Sequence record: PQ464590.1
Length of the DNA stretch: 64,000 nt
Reading direction: 5' to 3' (one strand)
Part shown: in pieces, positions 2,640 through 11,108 of the stretch
Layout: every line of letters starts with the position of its first letter
How positions within the stretch are numbered: position 1 is the stretch's first letter
Translations under genes and position numbers: made by a program
The notes under the pieces: generated by a model
The model's database searches: none
What the model saw: the letters and a program-made list of their open reading frames with translations, nothing else
Told to the model about the DNA's origin: nothing

Positions 2640-2680
2640 AACTTTTTATTAAAATGGGGAAATTTCTTTCCCCTTGTAAC

Positions 2681-4147
2681 TTATAGGTTTTTCTCTGCGA
2701 ACTCTGCGAGTGGAGAACGAACAACACCTTCTAGCTCAATTACACGGCAACCAGGCCAGTCTTTGAATTTCTCGGTAACGTACGTTAGACCACTGTTCGT
2801 TGCACTGATGAACTTACTATCAATCTGGGAGAGGTTCCCCATGATGATAACTTTACAGTTCTCACCTGCACGAGTCAGGATTGTTTTTGCCTGTGCTGGA
2901 GTAATGTTCTGGAATTCATCCACGATTAGAATCGTGTTGATGAAACTACGTCCACGGATGAAGTTCAGTGCTTTGAACTGAATCTGATTACGTTTCATAA
3001 TCTCTTCAATGGAACCTTGAGGGTTCGCGTCATCTTTGTGTAGATATTCCAATGCATCAATCGCCGCACCACAGAACGGGATTACCTTCTCCGCTTCTGT
3101 GCCTGGTAAGAAACCAATCTCTTCAAATTGTGAATCCTGTGTCTTAGAGAAGATCACACGCTCAAAATGATTTCCACGGTTCTTAGGCTCCAGTACTAAG
3201 TCCAAAGCACATGCTAAGGTGATTAGTGTTTTACCTGTACCCGCTGAACCTAATAGTACTGTAATGTGTACATCAGGATCAAGAATACTATTGATTGCCA
3301 TCGCTTGCTTCACGTTCTTAGCTTTGATGTCCCAGACTTTCTGACGAAGTGCTTGACTCTGACCAACATCCAAGAATATTTGGTACACAGTTTCATCAAC
3401 TTCACCATCTGTGAACTCGCGATCACCAAGGCCATCATACACTAAAAGTAGCTCATTGTCATCATAAATGTAGTCACCACAGCATAGACCGTCAGGAAGT
3501 AGACCATCAAGAGTACCTTCTGGAACCATGTGGTATAGTTTACGACCTTCTTGTGTACTGAACACTTCTACATTCTTGTCTTCAATCTCTTTCCAGAAGT
3601 CAAAATCAATTAGATGATGACCAGTGTGGATTAGATCCGAGTCAGAAATGGTAACATCATTACGATAATCCTGTACTTCAACACCGTAAGCCATAGCTTT
3701 GATACGCATGTTGATATCACGAGTTACCAGTACTGAACCAGTTGCTAATGCTACAAGAATAATCTTGTCGTCCGGTACGGAACTATGCATTAGTGTAGCT
3801 ACTTTTGCAGCTTCTTCATCAGGTTTGTCCTGATTCATAGCACGCAATAGTGCTTCAGCTTCTTCAGCAGTAACGATTTGCAAACGACTGTCTGAATCCA
3901 AATGTGGATGCAGACGGGACATATCCACTCCAGTAGCTGAAATTTCTTCGTGAGTAGCTTCTTCAAGAATGTTGCTGATGTTACGGATAGCGATACGTGC
4001 ATCACGTGATACGTCAACGTTACGACTCTTGATTGAATCCAACTCTTCCAGTACTGTAAATGGTAGTACTACTGTTGCTCCTTTGAATGCAGTTACTGCA
4101 CTATGGTCACTTAGTAGTACGTTTGTATCGATAGCATATTTTTTCAT
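2681..4147 (-). CDS. phoH: PIN-domain PhoH-family ATPase (PhoH2/YlaK-like)
   Basis: N-terminal YAIDTNVLL and PDDKI..TRDINMRIKA (PIN); GSAGTGKT Walker A; FIRGRS; VDEFQN; MGNLSQID. Confidence 0.93.
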   Translation of the reverse strand: MKKYAIDTNVLLSDHSAVTAFKGATVVLPFTVLEELDSIKSRNVDVSRDARIAIRNISNILEEATHEEISATGVDMSRLHPHLDSDSRLQIVTAEEAEALLRAMNQDKPDEEAAKVATLMHSSVPDDKIILVALATGSVLVTRDINMRIKAMAYGVEVQDYRNDVTISDSDLIHTGHHLIDFDFWKEIEDKNVEVFSTQEGRKLYHMVPEGTLDGLLPDGLCCGDYIYDDNELLLVYDGLGDREFTDGEVDETVYQIFLDVGQSQALRQKVWDIKAKNVKQAMAINSILDPDVHITVLLGSAGTGKTLITLACALDLVLEPKNRGNHFERVIFSKTQDSQFEEIGFLPGTEAEKVIPFCGAAIDALEYLHKDDANPQGSIEEIMKRNQIQFKALNFIRGRSFINTILIVDEFQNITPAQAKTILTRAGENCKVIIMGNLSQIDSKFISATNSGLTYVTEKFKDWPGCRVIELEGVVRSPLAEFAEKNL

Positions 4148-4185: not shown

Positions 4186-4497
4186 TCATTTTGAAGGGCT
4201 GTAGTTCACATAGCACTGTAAACCTTTAACCCGTTCAGTCCAACACTGCTGGTAAACAATTTGACCAACAGAAACTGGATCTGATGATGTTGAATTCATT
4301 GTAAGACCATCACTGGTTTTCAATGTAAACGAACAATCTGTCTTATTACACTGTCCAATCGTCTGAACAGTGCCTGTATTGTAGTATATGTCTAATTTTT
4401 CAGTATCGTAATTTTGCTGAGCAGCACAAAAGCGAATTGAGAAAATTGCAACGATAATACCGATAAAACCCAGTACTTTCATCATACACAGCCTCAC
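4186..4497 (-). CDS. hypothetical secreted or membrane-anchored protein
   Basis: Hydrophobic N-terminus VLGFIGIIVAIFSI; several Cys. Confidence 0.65.
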   Translation of the reverse strand: MRLCMMKVLGFIGIIVAIFSIRFCAAQQNYDTEKLDIYYNTGTVQTIGQCNKTDCSFTLKTSDGLTMNSTSSDPVSVGQIVYQQCWTERVKGLQCYVNYSPSK

Positions 4498-4820
4498 AGA
4501 TGTTTGAAACCATTCTCCAGATAAGATACAATATTCTTCAACCCAACTGGATTTGCACTGTGTACATAGTACTCGAATGGTTCTTTTATATTATTGTCAA
4601 ACATGTACTCAATCAAGTACTTCGCAAAAGTATAACCCGTCTTTTCTACAACCGATTCGGTATCTCCGAGGTCATGGTCGAATGATACAAATTTTGGAAG
4701 TCCGTGCTTTTGTACATACGAAATCGCGTCTTCACATGTGCGTACTACGATAAAACCCTCTCCTGGGTAATATTTTTCAGCATCACGCAAGTCATCAATG
4801 AACAGATTATACATCGTCAT
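4494..4820 (-). CDS. cyclic-phosphate-processing receiver-like (cREC) domain protein
   Basis: LFIDDLR, VSFDHDLG, TGY, HSANPVG motifs. Confidence 0.75.
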   Translation of the reverse strand: MTMYNLFIDDLRDAEKYYPGEGFIVVRTCEDAISYVQKHGLPKFVSFDHDLGDTESVVEKTGYTFAKYLIEYMFDNNIKEPFEYYVHSANPVGLKNIVSYLENGFKHL

Positions 4821-5381
4821 TTACCCTCTGTCAACGTAATCTACAAGAAGATTTTCCTTCTGTACAAGACGTTCAAGTTCAATCTTTGATGTGCCAATAT
4901 ATAGCTGGTTCAGTAGGTTATTGTACCCACATTCGTTACCACGGCCTTTTGTGTACCGACAGATGTGCATGAGGTTCACTCCTGCATTCTCTGCACTAAA
5001 ATGCTCACCCAAGTGTGCGTTGTTGCGAATTTCTTGAATTTCTTCGTACGAAACCTCATACGAGAAACTATGATTGTGTGTCCCATTTGGGCTGCGAATA
5101 CTTGCCAACGGCACTAAACGTGAGATATCGAGGTCGTAATGGATCTCTTCCCATGCTTCACGTTTGATTGCAATTTCAAGGGATTCATCGTCAGGTTCTA
5201 CCCCGCCGCCAACACCACCCATCATACCATCGAAGCGTAACTCTGACAGTACTAAAGATACGTTCGGAATGTCATTATATGGGTAATTCTGGTACGGAGT
5301 GCAATTCCGTGCGAAAATCCACACAAATACACAATCAAAACGAGTACTGCGTTCACCGAATGGTACGTCAACAAATTCCAC
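4821..5381 (-). CDS. Nudix hydrolase, NUDT16/X29-like
   Basis: LRFDGMMGGVGGGVEPDDESLEIAIKREAWEEI Nudix box; GTG start with AGGAG RBS. Confidence 0.8.
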   Translation of the reverse strand: MEFVDVPFGERSTRFDCVFVWIFARNCTPYQNYPYNDIPNVSLVLSELRFDGMMGGVGGGVEPDDESLEIAIKREAWEEIHYDLDISRLVPLASIRSPNGTHNHSFSYEVSYEEIQEIRNNAHLGEHFSAENAGVNLMHICRYTKGRGNECGYNNLLNQLYIGTSKIELERLVQKENLLVDYVDRG

Positions 5382-5391
5382 TTTTGTTCTC

Positions 5392-6150
5392 CTATTTTAC
5401 TCTCTCATTTACGATATCAATAATTTCCAGGATTGCTTTTGTGATCGGCTTGTAGATTTTTTTGTCGAATGTCCAGTCGTTCTCACCACGTTTGAGGTTC
5501 ACATTCACCGTGTAAGCTGGAGTACCTAAGCCAACCATGTCGCTCCATTTCAAAATTGTATCAGAAGAACCAATTATAATAACTGTATCAAGTTCTGTCA
5601 AGCTTTGCAGTACTTTATTTCTTTCCGCATAAAGTTCAAGACGCTGTCCATCAACGTAACGCTCGGATTCACCAAGGAAAACAACGTTAGGTTTAGCATA
5701 TACGTCCTCTTTTGGAATATATGGTTCATAACCAACATCCAGTACTGTAAAGTCGTTGTGAGCCATAGAATATCCCTCAATTACTTCTTTGAGGTTCCCA
5801 TGAAGGTGCATGGCAGTCCCACCAGCACGCTCATACAAATCGTCCACATTAGCTGTAATGTGCAAGAAACGATCACCCAATTCAGCTTCTAGTCCAGCAA
5901 TGGCGTAGTGTGCATCATTTGGTTCTTTATCCTTCAACATCACTCGGAGAGTATTATAGAATGAATGAATGTGAGCGTACTTACTACCTAAGCTTGCAAT
6001 ATTACAAACATCATTGATGTTCACACCTTCCCATAATGCATCTTCTGCATCACGAAAAGTACTAATGCCTGATTCAGCACTAAGACCAGCACCGCTTAGA
6101 ATTAACAAACGTTTCTGTCCCTTAGCTGCAATAAATTTATTCACATCCAT
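5392..6150 (-). CDS. Sir2/CobB-family NAD-dependent deacylase
   Basis: SGAGLSAESGISTFRD, ITANVDDLYERAG, HLHG, KPNVVFLGE, IIGSS. Confidence 0.92.
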   Translation of the reverse strand: MDVNKFIAAKGQKRLLILSGAGLSAESGISTFRDAEDALWEGVNINDVCNIASLGSKYAHIHSFYNTLRVMLKDKEPNDAHYAIAGLEAELGDRFLHITANVDDLYERAGGTAMHLHGNLKEVIEGYSMAHNDFTVLDVGYEPYIPKEDVYAKPNVVFLGESERYVDGQRLELYAERNKVLQSLTELDTVIIIGSSDTILKWSDMVGLGTPAYTVNVNLKRGENDWTFDKKIYKPITKAILEIIDIVNERVK

Positions 6151-6159
6151 AGTAGTTCC

Positions 6160-6591
6160 TTATTTCTTCAAAGCATTAAACTTTTCATTTCCAAACTTAA
6201 GTACTTTAGGAATACCCTTCAATTTGATTAAAAGTTCTAGTAGATCTTTGTCAGTGTCTTTTGGATTGTAGTTAATGCTCATGTGTATTAGTAAACTGGG
6301 GAAGCTATGATTATATCCAGCATTCTTAAGTTCTTTGTGACGTTTAGTAATGCCAGGAGAGTCCATCGTGATTGCTATCGCATCACCTAGCATCTTCACA
6401 CCAGTTACTTTTGCGTTGTATACTTGGGTATTTTTTAGTATTTTGATGTCAGGATCACTTTCATCGTACATTAATGTGCAGTGTAGTTCAGAAGGTGGAA
6501 GACATTCAATTCCTGCCACCTTCATTATTTTATGAATTTCTTTTGCTTGTGCTGCGTCGAGCTTCAAGCTGCAATATCCTTTGCCAGCCAT
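6160..6591 (-). CDS. acb1: Acb1-like (T4 gp57B-like) 2H phosphodiesterase
   Basis: Two HxT/S motifs: LHCTLMY and IHMSINY; T4 57B as recalled has IHSTICY and PHITLSY with similar spacing; start at MAGKGY. Confidence 0.72.
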   Translation of the reverse strand: MAGKGYCSLKLDAAQAKEIHKIMKVAGIECLPPSELHCTLMYDESDPDIKILKNTQVYNAKVTGVKMLGDAIAITMDSPGITKRHKELKNAGYNHSFPSLLIHMSINYNPKDTDKDLLELLIKLKGIPKVLKFGNEKFNALKK

Positions 6592-6602
6592 TATAATTCC
6601 CT

Positions 6603-6827
6603 CTAAAAGATTTGTGAATACGCTCCTATCCAGTACAGAATGTATGCCAATCCCAAGATTGTACAAACGAATCCTAACCGCATGATTACGAACGCTATTT
6701 GATAGTATTTAGAGGTGAATCTGCCGTCCGGTTCAAGAAAACCTTCCTTCCAGCCCTTCCATTCTAACATCATGATTACAACACTAGCAAGGTACAGTAG
6801 TACGATACCCCAGTATAAAATTACCAT
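6603..6827 (-). CDS. small membrane protein
   Basis: Two hydrophobic segments. Confidence 0.65.
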   Translation of the reverse strand: MVILYWGIVLLYLASVVIMMLEWKGWKEGFLEPDGRFTSKYYQIAFVIMRLGFVCTILGLAYILYWIGAYSQIF

Positions 6828-7914: not shown

Positions 7915-7941
7915 TAAAAAAGAGGGAGGCAATGCCTCCCA
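7915..7941 (-). terminator. intrinsic terminator after nadV
   Basis: GGGAGGCATTGCCTCCC hairpin followed by a T-tract on the minus strand. Confidence 0.75.
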
Positions 7942-7948
7942 ATATCAA

Positions 7949-9427
7949 TTATAGTCCTTTATTTGCACGAGCACGTACATCATCAAAGCTGCTTAGGTTC
8001 ATGATCTCACCGTTGATATACATATCTACCATCATATCACGGAGGAATGGATTCACCTCTTGTAGCTCAATACGTTCGGCTAGGATCTTACCACTGCTGG
8101 TACATTCGTAAGTAGTCACACGACCACGTAGAGAACGTTTACCAACATCGGTAATTGGGTCTTTGAACAGGTCTTCCCAAGTACCATCTGCTAGCTGCTG
8201 TGCAGAACCTTTCATTGCAAAGGAATATGTATCGCGGCCTTTCTCTGGGTGTACAAGTTTACCACCCATACCGAATACGATATTCTCTAAAGAGTACATC
8301 TTAGCTTCTAAGTTCTCAACGATAGTACGGATACTTTCTTCGTTGATGCCGTCGCCTTGAATAACTCCGATATAACCTGGAAGTACAGAATAGCCATTTG
8401 CGTTTACAGTACTACCAAATTTCTCCATCAAAATCTCTAGGATTTCGATAGGCATTGTGGTTGGATCACCACTGTCTGGACGCATAACAAGTTTAGCACC
8501 AGGGCAGCGTTTACCAATCTCTTCAATTGTTGCTTTTAGTTTAGTACCGATGAAGTCACGCACGAAACGTTTAGCGTCATAAGTATCGATAACTACAGAA
8601 ACAATTGGTGGTACACCTACTGAACCGTTAGCAATGTATTTCTCTACTTTCTTCTCCCATAGGCGAACCATTTTGATTGCCATGTTGAAGTCATCGCGTT
8701 TGTCCGCGTCAGAGTTAGAGCAAGTAGCACTGTGCTCACTAGCTGTAACACTGCTCAAGTACGCGTTCGTGGTGCGATAGTAAGCTTTGATGTAACGGTT
8801 AGCCGCTAGGCAGTCTGATCCATTGAACACCACAGCGTGAGAAATACCTGCAAGGATTGCAGACTCATAGCTTGATGCAGAACGGTCGCCAAAGTTATGC
8901 AAGTGGTAATCGACAAAGCGATGACCAGCGTGACGTTCCATAACATCAGCAAGGAACACTTTGATACTACGAGCGTTCGAAGCTACAGTGGTAGGGAACT
9001 GCACTGCACGTTGAAGTTGAGTTTCAATGTACGATGCGATAACTTTTACACGTGGATCAGTACTGAAGGAGCGTAATAGTGGAACTCCAACAGGAACTAC
9101 AGTACCTTCTGGAATTGCACGGATGTGAAGCGGGAGTTTTCCACCATGAACATTCACGATGTGTTCCCAGAATTCACGGTCAAAATCATCACCACGCTCA
9201 GTGGTTTCTAGTTCAGCTTCATCGATATCAGCCGTTGTAATCGTAATATCAAGGTACTCTTGGAGATAAATCTCTAGACCCATCATCACTACATGACTGG
9301 TATATTTTGTTGGCTTACGAGCAACGATGTTAGATTCTAGACCGATTACACCGTCTTTCATCATAGCATCATGACCAGTTTTGTAAGAGTCAACGTTCAG
9401 GATAAAGTTCACATTTAGATTTTTCAT
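7949..9427 (-). CDS. nadV: nicotinamide phosphoribosyltransferase
   Basis: DSYKTGH, LHNFGDRS, ASEHS, SVVIDTYD, LVMRPDSGDP, VIQGDGI, FGMGG, RDTYSFAMK. Confidence 0.93.
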   Translation of the reverse strand: MKNLNVNFILNVDSYKTGHDAMMKDGVIGLESNIVARKPTKYTSHVVMMGLEIYLQEYLDITITTADIDEAELETTERGDDFDREFWEHIVNVHGGKLPLHIRAIPEGTVVPVGVPLLRSFSTDPRVKVIASYIETQLQRAVQFPTTVASNARSIKVFLADVMERHAGHRFVDYHLHNFGDRSASSYESAILAGISHAVVFNGSDCLAANRYIKAYYRTTNAYLSSVTASEHSATCSNSDADKRDDFNMAIKMVRLWEKKVEKYIANGSVGVPPIVSVVIDTYDAKRFVRDFIGTKLKATIEEIGKRCPGAKLVMRPDSGDPTTMPIEILEILMEKFGSTVNANGYSVLPGYIGVIQGDGINEESIRTIVENLEAKMYSLENIVFGMGGKLVHPEKGRDTYSFAMKGSAQQLADGTWEDLFKDPITDVGKRSLRGRVTTYECTSSGKILAERIELQEVNPFLRDMMVDMYINGEIMNLSSFDDVRARANKGL

Positions 9428-9475: not shown

Positions 9476-10003
9476 TTATGTTAGCAAACTCACCGGAAGT
9501 TTGTACTTCAATTCCGCGTTGGAGAACATATCTTTGTCTCCTGGGATCATCATTTTGAAGTATCTTTCCTCCTTAGAATTCACGATATCCAGTACTGGAA
9601 AAGTATTTCCATTTTTGTGTACTAGGATTCCGTTCGAAGTATATTCATGAACTGCACTCATATACTTCTTTGAAATTGTTAGGGTACAATCGTATACTTT
9701 TCCGTACTGATATACCCACTGACCAATGTCAGTACTTCTTGAACCATCGAATGGATACTGAAAGTTCATATCAGAAGTACCGAACCATTGCCGAGCAATG
9801 AACCAAAACCTATTATGACCTTGTATATCCATTGCCCGATTCAGATGCCTCACCGCATCAAATATAACATCTTCAGATGACGCACTGAACCCCACATTGA
9901 AAAGAATCAACTCTTCCATTTCATGTTTGTTATAAACCATTCCTGGATGGTTACTAAGGGATTTTATTTCATCCAATAGCCCAGGTGTCAGTACGTACAA
10001 CAT
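9476..10003 (-). CDS. hypothetical protein between natV and nadV
   Basis: ORF abutting natV; start MLYVL. Confidence 0.7.
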   Translation of the reverse strand: MLYVLTPGLLDEIKSLSNHPGMVYNKHEMEELILFNVGFSASSEDVIFDAVRHLNRAMDIQGHNRFWFIARQWFGTSDMNFQYPFDGSRSTDIGQWVYQYGKVYDCTLTISKKYMSAVHEYTSNGILVHKNGNTFPVLDIVNSKEERYFKMMIPGDKDMFSNAELKYKLPVSLLT

Positions 10004-10004
10004 A

Positions 10005-11108
10005 TTACAGAATTCCCAAGAAGGTGTCAATGATAGATACGTGATCTACAAAGAATTTATCACGGTTCTTAGCAATCTCGGTCATTGGCATCCAGAAGCA
10101 ACCTTTGAGGTCATCTGAACCTTTGACTTTAGGTAGTTTAGTACCTTCGAGTTTGATGTACGCACACTTCGTAATTACACGCCAGCGTGGGTCACGGTCG
10201 AAGTCACCAAACTCTTCTACGCGTTCAATCGAACCACGGAGTTTCTTCTCAGGTACGTCAATTTTGGTTTCTTCTTTCAGTTCACGGATAGCGGCATCAA
10301 CCTGATCCTTATCTTTCCATGCATCGAAGAATCCACCAGGGAGACAGTACAGACCTTTTCCTGGTTCAGAGCGACGAATACCTACTAGTACGTGACCTGC
10401 ACATACAACAAGGCTATCACCCGTCAGGAACGGAATTGTATCGAACGGTAGCTTTTTCTTCATATCTGATTTGTATTTTTGCGTGAACGCATGTTCTTTT
10501 ACTAGATAGTCAAATACATCAGATTTATCTACACTAAATTTATTCAAGAACTCAATAGATTCAGCAGGAAGATTTTCTGGAATCTGTTTAGTACTGAATA
10601 GTTGATTACGAATAGATGAACTGTTCAAAACTTCAGAACTGTACACCTGAACGGAATTCTGATTTTTAGTTTTGAACCCACTAACTTCAGGGATAAAATC
10701 TTGCTTCCACTGCGGGAAGAACTCAAGATAAAAAGTACTGTCATCGCCTTCTTTACGACAACCAGTTAGAGTAATGTTCTCACTCTTAGTACATGAGCGA
10801 ACTTGCTGCTGAACTTCCATGAGCCATTTCTGGTTGTTGTACACGAAATCATGCACAGGTAGGATGTCAATATTCACACGACGACCTTTCGCCCATTCGT
10901 CTTGTGCAAGACGGATTGTGATACTGTCCAGTACTTTAGCACGCTCATCAAAGGTGAACGGGTTCTTTGGGCTGCGAGCTTGTTCAGCACTACCAACCAG
11001 AACGATTACACGGTCAGCAGTTTTGATTGCATGTTCCAGTACTGCTTCGTGACCATTGTGTGCTGGCTGGAAGCGTCCAATATATACATATACGTTTTCG
11101 TTTTTCAT
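10005..11108 (-). CDS. natV: bifunctional NMN adenylyltransferase / ADP-ribose Nudix hydrolase (NadM-Nudix)
   Basis: GRFQPAHNGH, GSA...KNPFTFDER, SSSIR; C-terminal LPGGF...AAIRELKEET and RDPRWRVIT. Confidence 0.92.
   Translation of the reverse strand: MKNENVYVYIGRFQPAHNGHEAVLEHAIKTADRVIVLVGSAEQARSPKNPFTFDERAKVLDSITIRLAQDEWAKGRRVNIDILPVHDFVYNNQKWLMEVQQQVRSCTKSENITLTGCRKEGDDSTFYLEFFPQWKQDFIPEVSGFKTKNQNSVQVYSSEVLNSSSIRNQLFSTKQIPENLPAESIEFLNKFSVDKSDVFDYLVKEHAFTQKYKSDMKKKLPFDTIPFLTGDSLVVCAGHVLVGIRRSEPGKGLYCLPGGFFDAWKDKDQVDAAIRELKEETKIDVPEKKLRGSIERVEEFGDFDRDPRWRVITKCAYIKLEGTKLPKVKGSDDLKGCFWMPMTEIAKNRDKFFVDHVSIIDTFLGIL

Follow-up and report, generated by a model that had tools for sequence, protein, structure and literature searches.

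We showed that the gene at positions 4821-5381 of the window analysed here, which comprises the last 64 kb of the 366-kb genome of Erwinia phage Hallingskeid (PQ464590.1), a member of the RaK2/121Q/GAP32 group of jumbo phages, encodes a Nudix hydrolase of the NUDT16-like family with intact catalytic residues. Its resemblance to NUDT16 goes far beyond chance. In GenBank the gene is labelled just "nudix hydrolase"; positions 4400-6700 of the window correspond to 306558-308858 of the record with 100% identity. Its closest characterised counterparts are human NUDT16 and Xenopus X29; the vertebrate enzyme is studied for its decapping of U8 snoRNA, its hydrolysis of inosine diphosphate (IDP) and its trimming of protein-linked ADP-ribose. 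As regards function, we put at about even the chance that the phage enzyme is the diphosphatase half of a unit formed with the adjoining cyclic-phosphate-processing receiver-like (cREC) protein, which would act on ADP-ribose derivatives within a phage NAD+ island. The features on which the argument depends are the following:

4821-5381, minus strand: NUDT16-like Nudix hydrolase, 186 aa, GTG start (PF22327, PHROG 9999, AlphaFold2 model, Foldseek, VIA)
5226-5237, minus strand: RFDG motif (R49, D51, G52), equivalent to human Arg50 and Asp52 in the alignment to NUDT16 chains
5136-5204, minus strand: Nudix box, residues 60-82 (G-x5-E-x7-R-E-A-W-E-E-I-H-Y), with R74, E75, E78 and E79 intact
4875-4901, minus strand: C-terminal helix motif YIGTSKIEL, residues 161-169, equivalent to the base-binding helix FIGSAREQL of the human enzyme
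4494-4820, minus strand: cREC protein (Pfam PF20274, E 4.5e-25)

The first-pass annotation of this DNA had proposed a NUDT16/X29-type enzyme from a segment ahead of the Nudix box and a C-terminal YIGTSKIEL. Both are present (LRFDGMMGGVGGGVE as residues 48-62 and YIGTSKIEL as residues 161-169), and the human strings given for comparison, MRFDGRLGFPGGFVD and FIGSAREQL, occur in solved NUDT16 chains and align exactly to these phage segments with HMMER. The Pfam family Nudt16-like (PF22327) matches the protein with an E-value of 6.8e-14 and 52.6 bits (cut-off 27), compared with 30.1 bits (E 5.5e-7) for the generic NUDIX family PF00293. The match to PHROG 9999 has an E-value of 4.9e-82, while that to PHROG 1198 (MutT/NUDIX) is weak (8.1e-6), and no curated bacterial Nudix family of NCBIfam was matched at E <= 1e-3 (cREC likewise gave no NCBIfam match). 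When the single sequence was compared with the Protein Data Bank (PDB) using phmmer, the first 15 distinct sequences were NUDT16, X29 and TIRR (syndesmos), the last of which is a NUDT16 paralogue. A profile built from 21 phage homologues retrieved X29 at 8.5e-12 and human NUDT16 at ~5e-11, and the first Nudix protein outside the family at 0.005.

The fold agrees with this assignment. In a Foldseek search with the AlphaFold2 model (mean pLDDT 94.1), ranks 1-39 were taken exclusively by NUDT16, X29 and TIRR (E 4e-13 to 1.5e-9, TM 0.69-0.79), and the next match was a CoA pyrophosphatase (E 1.8e-7, TM 0.57). VIA, which is independent of Foldseek, placed X29 on top among 48,161 chains (Z 20.9, 175 of the 186 residues), the next fold reaching Z 14.8 over 128 residues; the 47 additional residues aligned with X29 are family-specific additions to the Nudix core (an N-terminal strand and extra helices). 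MutT-type structures scored Z 12-13.4.

The best matches are thus not the MutT/NudE-type enzymes which the annotation had named as the outcome opposed to its own reading. The view that the protein is a housekeeping Nudix hydrolase of this type, acting on oxidised dNTPs and only superficially similar to NUDT16, can point to the generic NUDIX match and the weak match to PHROG 1198, but is scarcely credible: it is contradicted by the PDB profile search, Foldseek and VIA, in which MutT-type structures lie about 6-8 Z lower with ~50 fewer residues covered, as well as by the bit scores, PHROG 9999 and the lack of any NCBIfam Nudix match. Moreover, the phage has a separate MutT-like Nudix gene next to its tail sheath gene.

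The distribution of the family was also examined. A word-index search, which found close relatives only, yielded 48 homologue clusters (39-98% identity), all of which carry precomputed PF22327 matches, while a profile search of 1.84 billion representatives returned 479 proteins at E <= 1e-3 (174 at <= 1e-10), mostly unnamed and metagenomic. All of the 20 family proteins that were scanned exceeded the Nudt16-like cut-off, and this family was top-scoring in 17; in the remaining three, slightly higher scores were given by a fused Ham1 domain (P0101) or by generic NUDIX (P0188 and P0194). Animal orthologues that bear the name "U8 snoRNA-decapping enzyme-like" were retrieved from Gordionus, a horsehair worm, and Ornithodoros, a tick. 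The contexts of the relatives include several phage-like contigs, a 618-kb contig of small open reading frames (ORFs) and one cellular contig, and clusters of look-alikes in the ESM Atlas were assigned to Uroviricota, Campylobacterota, Arthropoda and Chordata. A scan of bacterial genomes with the phage alignment found nothing, the search patterns being too clade-specific, and an alignment widened to 48 sequences offered no sufficiently conserved stretch; the picture for bacteria is therefore drawn from metagenomic contigs and from the hint of Campylobacterota in the ESM Atlas. Within the phage collection, this Nudix protein is present in 71 records, all RaK2-like.

In a maximum-likelihood tree of 130 rows, whose deep nodes are poorly supported, the RaK2-like phage proteins form one clade (SH-aLRT 96) nested among metagenomic sequences, including a member from a phage context. 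The animal sequences (Gordionus and Ornithodoros) form a clade of their own (SH-aLRT 99; 90 with the protist Goniomonas) in the other half of the tree, so the phage protein does not group with the animal NUDT16/X29 orthologues. We regard it as a bona fide member of the family, and neither as an orthologue of animal NUDT16 nor as a recent capture. On the sequences collected, the family is broadly prokaryotic and viral, and the animal enzymes are one of its branches. The first-pass annotation was right about the family but needs correction in one respect: with 479 relatives, mostly metagenomic and several in phage-like or bacterial contexts, the family is not a eukaryotic speciality.

Several fusions were observed in the wider family. 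A Ham1 ITPase-NUDT16-like protein (P0101, L021:5001-6176) is encoded on a cellular contig, where its neighbours include purA and SAICAR-synthase genes, and members of the set P0145, P0091 and P0188 are fused to HD_4 (RelA/SpoT-type hydrolase) domains. Fusions to ankyrin domains were seen as well. The Ham1 and HD_4 fusions hint at roles connected with inosine nucleotides and alarmones in other branches.

The alignments to NUDT16 chains (both single-sequence and profile) gave the following correspondence between phage and human residues:

phage R49: human R50
phage D51: human D52 (R49, F50, D51 and G52 align to R50-G53)
phage R74: human R75
phage E75: human E76
phage E78: human E79
phage E79: human E80
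phage E131: human E136
phage I162: human I164
phage T164: human S166

In the human enzyme, Arg50 touches the phosphates and is positioned by Asp52, forming a phosphate clamp (PMC4485890); Glu76, Glu80 and Glu136 are metal ligands (PMC4485890, PMC6459841), and Ile164, Ser166 and Gln170 are located at the base pocket (PMC6459841, PMC4485890). All nine phage residues listed above are invariant across the 21 phage homologues. In the family as a whole, E75, E79 and E131 are present in each of 166 members, R49 in 164 and D51 in 154. Since the catalytic and phosphate-binding residues are all kept, the enzyme should be active, and we predict that it is a diphosphatase.

The base-contacting residues are a different matter. 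In place of the animal base-recognition set His24/Phe57/Gln170, the phage protein has Phe23, Gly56 and Glu168, and as these contacts are replaced, specificity cannot be carried over from the human enzyme. The equivalent of His24 was located using the family alignment, in which position 23 is Tyr in 95 members, Phe in 35 and His in 13; Phe57 is replaced by Gly or Ala throughout the phage clade, and Glu168 is invariant in that clade. The human "mouth" residue Phe61 corresponds to Gly60, with which the Nudix box regains its canonical first glycine. We also considered the exchange of Gln170 for Glu168 as a marker of specificity for adenine versus hypoxanthine. This was rejected: Glu is the family default at position 168 (142 of 166 members, against 15 with Gln, which occurs in the animal rows), and the member fused to Ham1 ITPase also has Glu. 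Overall, the phage protein and human NUDT16/X29 have in common PF22327, the fold, the RFDG clamp, the glutamates of the Nudix box, E131 (E136) and the I-G-S/T helix motif, whereas they differ in sequence (21-25% identity), in their position in separate clades and in the acidic character of the phage protein (computed pI 4.8 and net charge -13; phage clade median pI 4.96, net charge ~-10). Furthermore, the phage Nudix adjoins or is fused to cREC, while eukaryotic NUDT16 proteins are not known to carry this domain.

The association with cREC deserves particular attention. The start codon of cREC (ATG) directly abuts the TAA stop codon of the Nudix gene; at the other end, the GTG start of the latter lies six bases past an AGGAG sequence sharing bases with the stop codon of Sir2, the gene upstream (both read directly from the sequence). 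The two proteins are joined into a single polypeptide of ~300 aa in 21 of the 48 clusters, including those of phages GAP32, fHe-Yen9-04, BF and XbC2. The fused forms are found in three separate subclades, although the well-supported branches alone force just one change. In a distant contig (L015), Nudix-cREC-PIN/PhoH is retained at 47% identity with no Sir2 nearby: the two upstream genes gave no sign of a diverged Sir2 or 2H (zero Pfam matches, BLASTP E 0.95). As it is encoded by the adjoining gene, is fused to the Nudix protein in many relatives and persists where Sir2 is missing, cREC is the tightest and most persistent partner, followed by PIN-PhoH and then by Sir2 and the NAD salvage genes. 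The first-pass annotation had stressed the position next to Sir2. The context does point to ADP-ribose chemistry, as was then supposed, but the emphasis has to be moved from Sir2 to cREC. The three roles suggested in the annotation, erasure of protein ADP-ribosylation, removal of NAD caps and destruction of ADP-ribose-derived signals, are hypothetical.

The cREC model (pLDDT 92) is a four-stranded, receiver-like fold. Receiver domains of response regulators account for all of its 50 best structural matches (Z up to 9.5), among which there is no characterised enzyme. The invariant residues follow strand 1 (D9-D10), strand 3 (D48-H49-D50) and strand 4 (S88/N90), and they match the acidic pocket behind the prediction of a cyclic-phosphate esterase made by the Aravind group (PMC7824862). 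The protein occurs in 180 records of the phage collection and is encoded once in the whole Hallingskeid genome.

The genes for Nudix and cREC form part of a co-directional array which extends from 11108 down to 2681, entirely on the minus strand, and comprises NMNAT-Nudix, an ORF without a family, NAMPT, several small membrane ORFs, 2H, Sir2, the NUDT16-like gene, cREC, a membrane protein and PIN-PhoH. Its remaining features are as follows:

10005-11108, minus strand: NMNAT fused to a NadM-type Nudix domain, second NAD+ salvage enzyme (Pfam, PHROG 1198/395)
9476-10030, minus strand: ORF of 184 aa between NAMPT and NMNAT-Nudix, matching no Pfam family
7949-9427, minus strand: NAMPT (nicotinamide phosphoribosyltransferase), first enzyme of NARP2-type NAD+ salvage (Pfam; kept upstream in relatives)
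7924-7940, minus strand: terminator-like hairpin after NAMPT, upstream of the 2H-Sir2-Nudix-cREC block (consensus scan only)
6160-6591, minus strand: 2H phosphoesterase (annotated CDS; the mechanical ORF, 6160-6666, is 75 bp longer upstream)
5392-6150, minus strand: CobB-like (class III-like) Sir2 (Pfam SIR2 E 7.1e-22; PDB CobB 1s5p E 7.9e-27)
4186-4497, minus strand: small conserved membrane protein between cREC and PhoH, without a Pfam family
2681-4147, minus strand: PIN-PhoH (predicted RNase and ATPase), last gene of the putative transcription unit (Pfam PIN_4 and PhoH)
2656-2673, minus strand: terminator-like hairpin after PIN-PhoH (consensus scan only)

The two hairpins bracket the genes from 2H to PhoH, and the same consensus scan found no convincing one between them. 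The product of the 2H gene matches the Pfam family Acb1 (anti-CBASS; PF23474, E 7.3e-15) and PHROG 755, which is of the LigT type and is annotated "RNA ligase". All five components, sirtuin, 2H, Nudix, cREC and PIN, are present and co-directional between 2681 and 6591. When eight of the proteins were compared with the fetched loci by tblastn, a common gene order was found in ten RaK2-like loci from four genera. Phages 121Q and RaK2 are without the 2H gene but have Sir2-Nudix-cREC, and 121Q has no NAD-salvage gene nearby; two metagenomic contigs at ~50% identity keep the full set from NMNAT-Nudix to PIN-PhoH, their flanks reaching the NMNAT gene.

Some further observations concern the individual loci. 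An ORF of similar size to that at 9476-10030 occupies the same gap between NAMPT and NMNAT in Serratia phage BF and in one metagenomic relative. On an unrelated phage-like metagenomic contig (L019:2687-8849), RlaP, GmrSD_N, the NUDT16-like gene, a rhomboid protease, NMNAT without its usual Nudix domain and NAMPT were found together; the stand-alone NUDT16-like gene may replace the missing NadM-type Nudix in this case. In a relative from IMG/VR (L007:4863-5602), the match to Sir2 is split into two overlapping pieces (query residues 1-75 and 73-247) that lie in different frames, an apparent frameshift or sequencing error. The 64-kb window contains only two perfect TTGACA-N17-TATAAT sigma-70 sites, at 5573-5601 and 4806-4834 (both minus), and both are found on the coding strand in an 800-bp stretch around the Nudix gene: one is in the 3' part of Sir2, and the other runs across the stop codon of Nudix and the start codon of cREC. 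The number expected is 0.03, and one shuffle in 100 reaches two; their positions are not conserved in 13 related loci, and we did not build on them as promoters. None of the listed sequencing runs that contain this stretch is recorded as RNA, and the wastewater "RNA-Seq" metagenomes with 25-30% of the sampled words may be DNA.

The neighbourhood of sirtuin, 2H, Nudix, cREC and PIN genes in jumbo phages has been described by Iyer et al. in 2021 and 2022 (PMC7824862, PMC9503650), and the system analysed here is the same: their example, Serratia phage BF, is a 63% identical relative in which the gene order is the same and Nudix and cREC are fused. In the proposal of these authors, RNA 2'-phosphates are the target of a KptA-like action of the sirtuin, and 2H, cREC and Nudix process the resulting ADP-ribose 1''-2'' cyclic phosphate (ADPr>P) or, alternatively, cREC linearises cyclic ADP-ribose for the Nudix enzyme (PMC9503650, PMC7824862). 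In the survey of 2022, most phage Nudix domains were sorted into T4 NudE-like and NadM-like clades, and NUDT16 has no occurrence in its text (PMC9503650). The neighbourhood, the Nudix-cREC fusion and the ADPr>P idea are thus already known, and PF22327 tags already exist in databases. The present analysis adds the assignment to the NUDT16 family, the evidence from the fold, the map of corresponding residues and the distribution across the family; a literature search returned no paper that links NUDT16 to phage Nudix proteins and no experiment on this protein, and we did not find its assignment to the family in print.

From the observed family, catalytic residues, fold, linkage and fusion we infer a substrate, an order of two steps and a biological purpose. 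The substrates would be ADP-ribose derivatives bearing a substituent on the distal ribose, with ADP-ribose 1''-2'' cyclic phosphate, ADP-ribose phosphate, O-acyl-ADP-ribose and plain ADP-ribose as candidates. The sirtuin would carry out a Tpt1-like 2'-phosphate transfer that generates ADP-ribose (cyclic) phosphate, cREC would open or remove the (cyclic) phosphate or another substituent, and the Nudix enzyme would cut the pyrophosphate to give AMP and a phosphoribosyl product. The products of NAD+ consumption might in this way be cleared, with AMP and ribose phosphate returned to metabolism. A parallel exists: in the pathway of Tpt1/KptA, cyclic phosphodiesterase and Macro (Poa1), the 2'-phosphate that tRNA ligation leaves on the RNA is removed in an NAD+-dependent reaction giving ADPr>P, which then has to be opened and disposed of. 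The chemistry proposed for the phage runs parallel to it, and sirtuin, cREC and the NUDT16-like Nudix would, hypothetically, stand in for its components. No Tpt1/KptA and no clear Macro domain were found in the whole Hallingskeid genome, which leaves room for the sirtuin-cREC-Nudix route of Iyer et al. The distal ribose of ADP-ribose is solvent-exposed in its complex with human NUDT16 (PMC6459841), and for this reason a substituted ADP-ribose is a plausible ligand of the NUDT16 fold.

A number of points weigh against a role in ADP-ribose processing. A literature search returned no biochemical data on any prokaryotic or viral NUDT16-like protein, and the human enzyme is poor on ADP-ribose (Km ~0.8 mM; PMC6459841) and favours IDP (PMC4485890). 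Its base contacts are, as described above, replaced (His24 by Phe23, Phe57 by Gly56 and Gln170 by Glu168). Hydrolysis of plain ADP-ribose would be redundant, since NMNAT already has a NadM-type ADP-ribose-pyrophosphatase domain. The Sir2 is CobB-like, and its action as a 2'-phosphate transferase is hypothetical. Finally, members fused to Ham1 ITPase or HD_4 mean that the family is not limited to ADP-ribose substrates, and the support lent by the gene neighbourhood is circumstantial.

It is against this background that the alternatives have to be considered. The enzyme might process RNA 5' ends, taking off caps (NAD, ADP-ribose, FAD or dinucleotide-polyphosphate) or a 5' pyrophosphate to leave 5'-monophosphates, while cREC would heal 3' ends that carry a 2',3'-cyclic phosphate; with PIN-PhoH and an RNA ligase this would amount to RNA repair or targeted decay. 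The founders of the NUDT16 family are RNA-decapping enzymes and human NUDT16 is reported to remove NAD, FAD and dpCoA caps. Moreover, PIN-PhoH still adjoins Nudix-cREC where Sir2 is missing, cREC is reported to be linked to RNA ligases in the genomes of both phages and cells (PMC7824862), and the phage genome encodes, at other sites, an Rnl2-type RNA ligase as well as a CCA-adding enzyme. We nevertheless find such a role unlikely. The protein is strongly acidic, as is its clade, and lacks an RNA-binding domain, while in the human dimer a positively charged trench serves to bind the substrate (PMC4485890); the RNA ligase is encoded 40 kb away, outside the island, and the NAD-salvage genes of the island would be left unexplained. 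A function in the purine pool is still harder to accept. The phage enzyme would hydrolyse the di- and triphosphates of (deoxy)inosine and xanthosine, possibly blunting deaminase defences that turn ATP into ITP; human NUDT16 prefers IDP and dIDP as substrates (PMC4485890), and the cellular member fused to Ham1 ITPase is surrounded by genes of purine metabolism (purA, SAICAR synthase). A paper on Cad1, concerned with ATP-to-ITP immunity, reportedly cites NUDT16. However, the Ham1-fused member belongs to the other half of the tree, the context of the phage clade is NAD, sirtuin and cREC and not purine metabolism, the hypoxanthine-recognising residues His24, Phe57 and Gln170 are replaced, and the fusion to a cyclic-phosphate esterase would remain unexplained, so that we consider this function very improbable.

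A third possibility is counter-defence: Nudix and cREC could cut the pyrophosphate of Thoeris gcADPR isomers, His-ADPR and other cyclic ADP-ribose messengers, beside an Acb1-like 2H protein directed at cyclic oligonucleotides and an NAD+ salvage pathway that counters NADase effectors. The neighbouring 2H protein does match the Acb1 family, NAMPT and NMNAT constitute the NARP2 counter-defence pathway (PMC13464706), and in the view of Iyer et al. the Nudix, Macro and cRec domains of phages mainly counter low-molecular-weight ADP-ribose signals (PMC9503650, PMC7824862); Gly or Ala at the positions of human Phe57 and Phe61 could, in addition, enlarge the pocket in the phage clade. On the other hand, a literature search produced no report of a Nudix enzyme degrading Thoeris signals, 121Q and RaK2 keep Sir2-Nudix-cREC where 2H is absent, and the sirtuin of the same operon would have no part to play in the explanation. 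No PADLOC model matched Nudix or cREC, the library being one of defence and not of anti-defence proteins. We hold a counter-defence role of this kind to be rather improbable, and slightly more so its narrower form, in which the NUDT16-like Nudix and cREC would be a dedicated destroyer of cyclic ADP-ribose-type messengers (e.g. gcADPR), either of them opening the ring and the Nudix enzyme cutting the pyrophosphate. The reading of the pair as a processing unit for ADP-ribose derivatives is the one we prefer.

The NUDT16-like protein can readily be told apart from the other Nudix enzymes of the phage. The NadM/NatV-type domain of NMNAT is encoded in the same island, ~5 kb away, and also belongs to NAD/ADP-ribose metabolism, but it matches only PF00293 and PHROG 1198/395 and not PF22327, and is fused to a nucleotidyltransferase instead of cREC. 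T4 NudE hydrolyses ADP-ribose, FAD and Ap3A (as cited in PMC9503650); the T4 NudE/virion MutT-like group is represented in Hallingskeid by the neighbour of the tail sheath gene (PHROG 1198, E 2.7e-41), compared with 8.1e-6 for the NUDT16-like protein. In total, three further Nudix genes of different types were identified in the phage: the MutT-like gene, located directly after the tail sheath gene, a Nudix-glutaredoxin fusion and the NMNAT fusion. The Nudix loci outside the window are as follows:

PQ464590.1, 227527-227997 and 259357-261157: further Nudix loci (L026 and L027)

The neighbours of the Nudix-glutaredoxin fusion are the CCA-adding enzyme and a "phosphatase" that matches Macro weakly. 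The phage was also searched for a PRPP (phosphoribosyl pyrophosphate) synthetase, which would close the loop of ribose-phosphate recycling, and none was found. The Sir2 protein reaches approximately a third of the NCBIfam cut-offs for CobB and has a single cysteine, and therefore no Cys4 zinc site; this type of Sir2 is present in 999 records of the phage collection, including T5-like and rV5-like phages.

The significance of these findings depends on the substrate. If this is plain ADP-ribose, the gene would be an unremarkable accessory of metabolism. If it is an immune messenger or an RNA cap, the protein would represent a new counter-defence or RNA-repair activity; were the pair indeed a messenger-destroying device, it would be the first Nudix-based anti-Thoeris enzyme, and the island, with its Acb1-like 2H, NARP2 and Nudix-cREC components, would be a multi-target anti-signalling cassette. 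A recombinant Nudix and cREC pair could be used to probe the published idea that phages process ADPr>P or cyclic ADP-ribose. The conserved phage clade, together with several hundred mostly metagenomic relatives, offers a tractable prokaryotic and viral model for the ancestral chemistry of the NUDT16 family.

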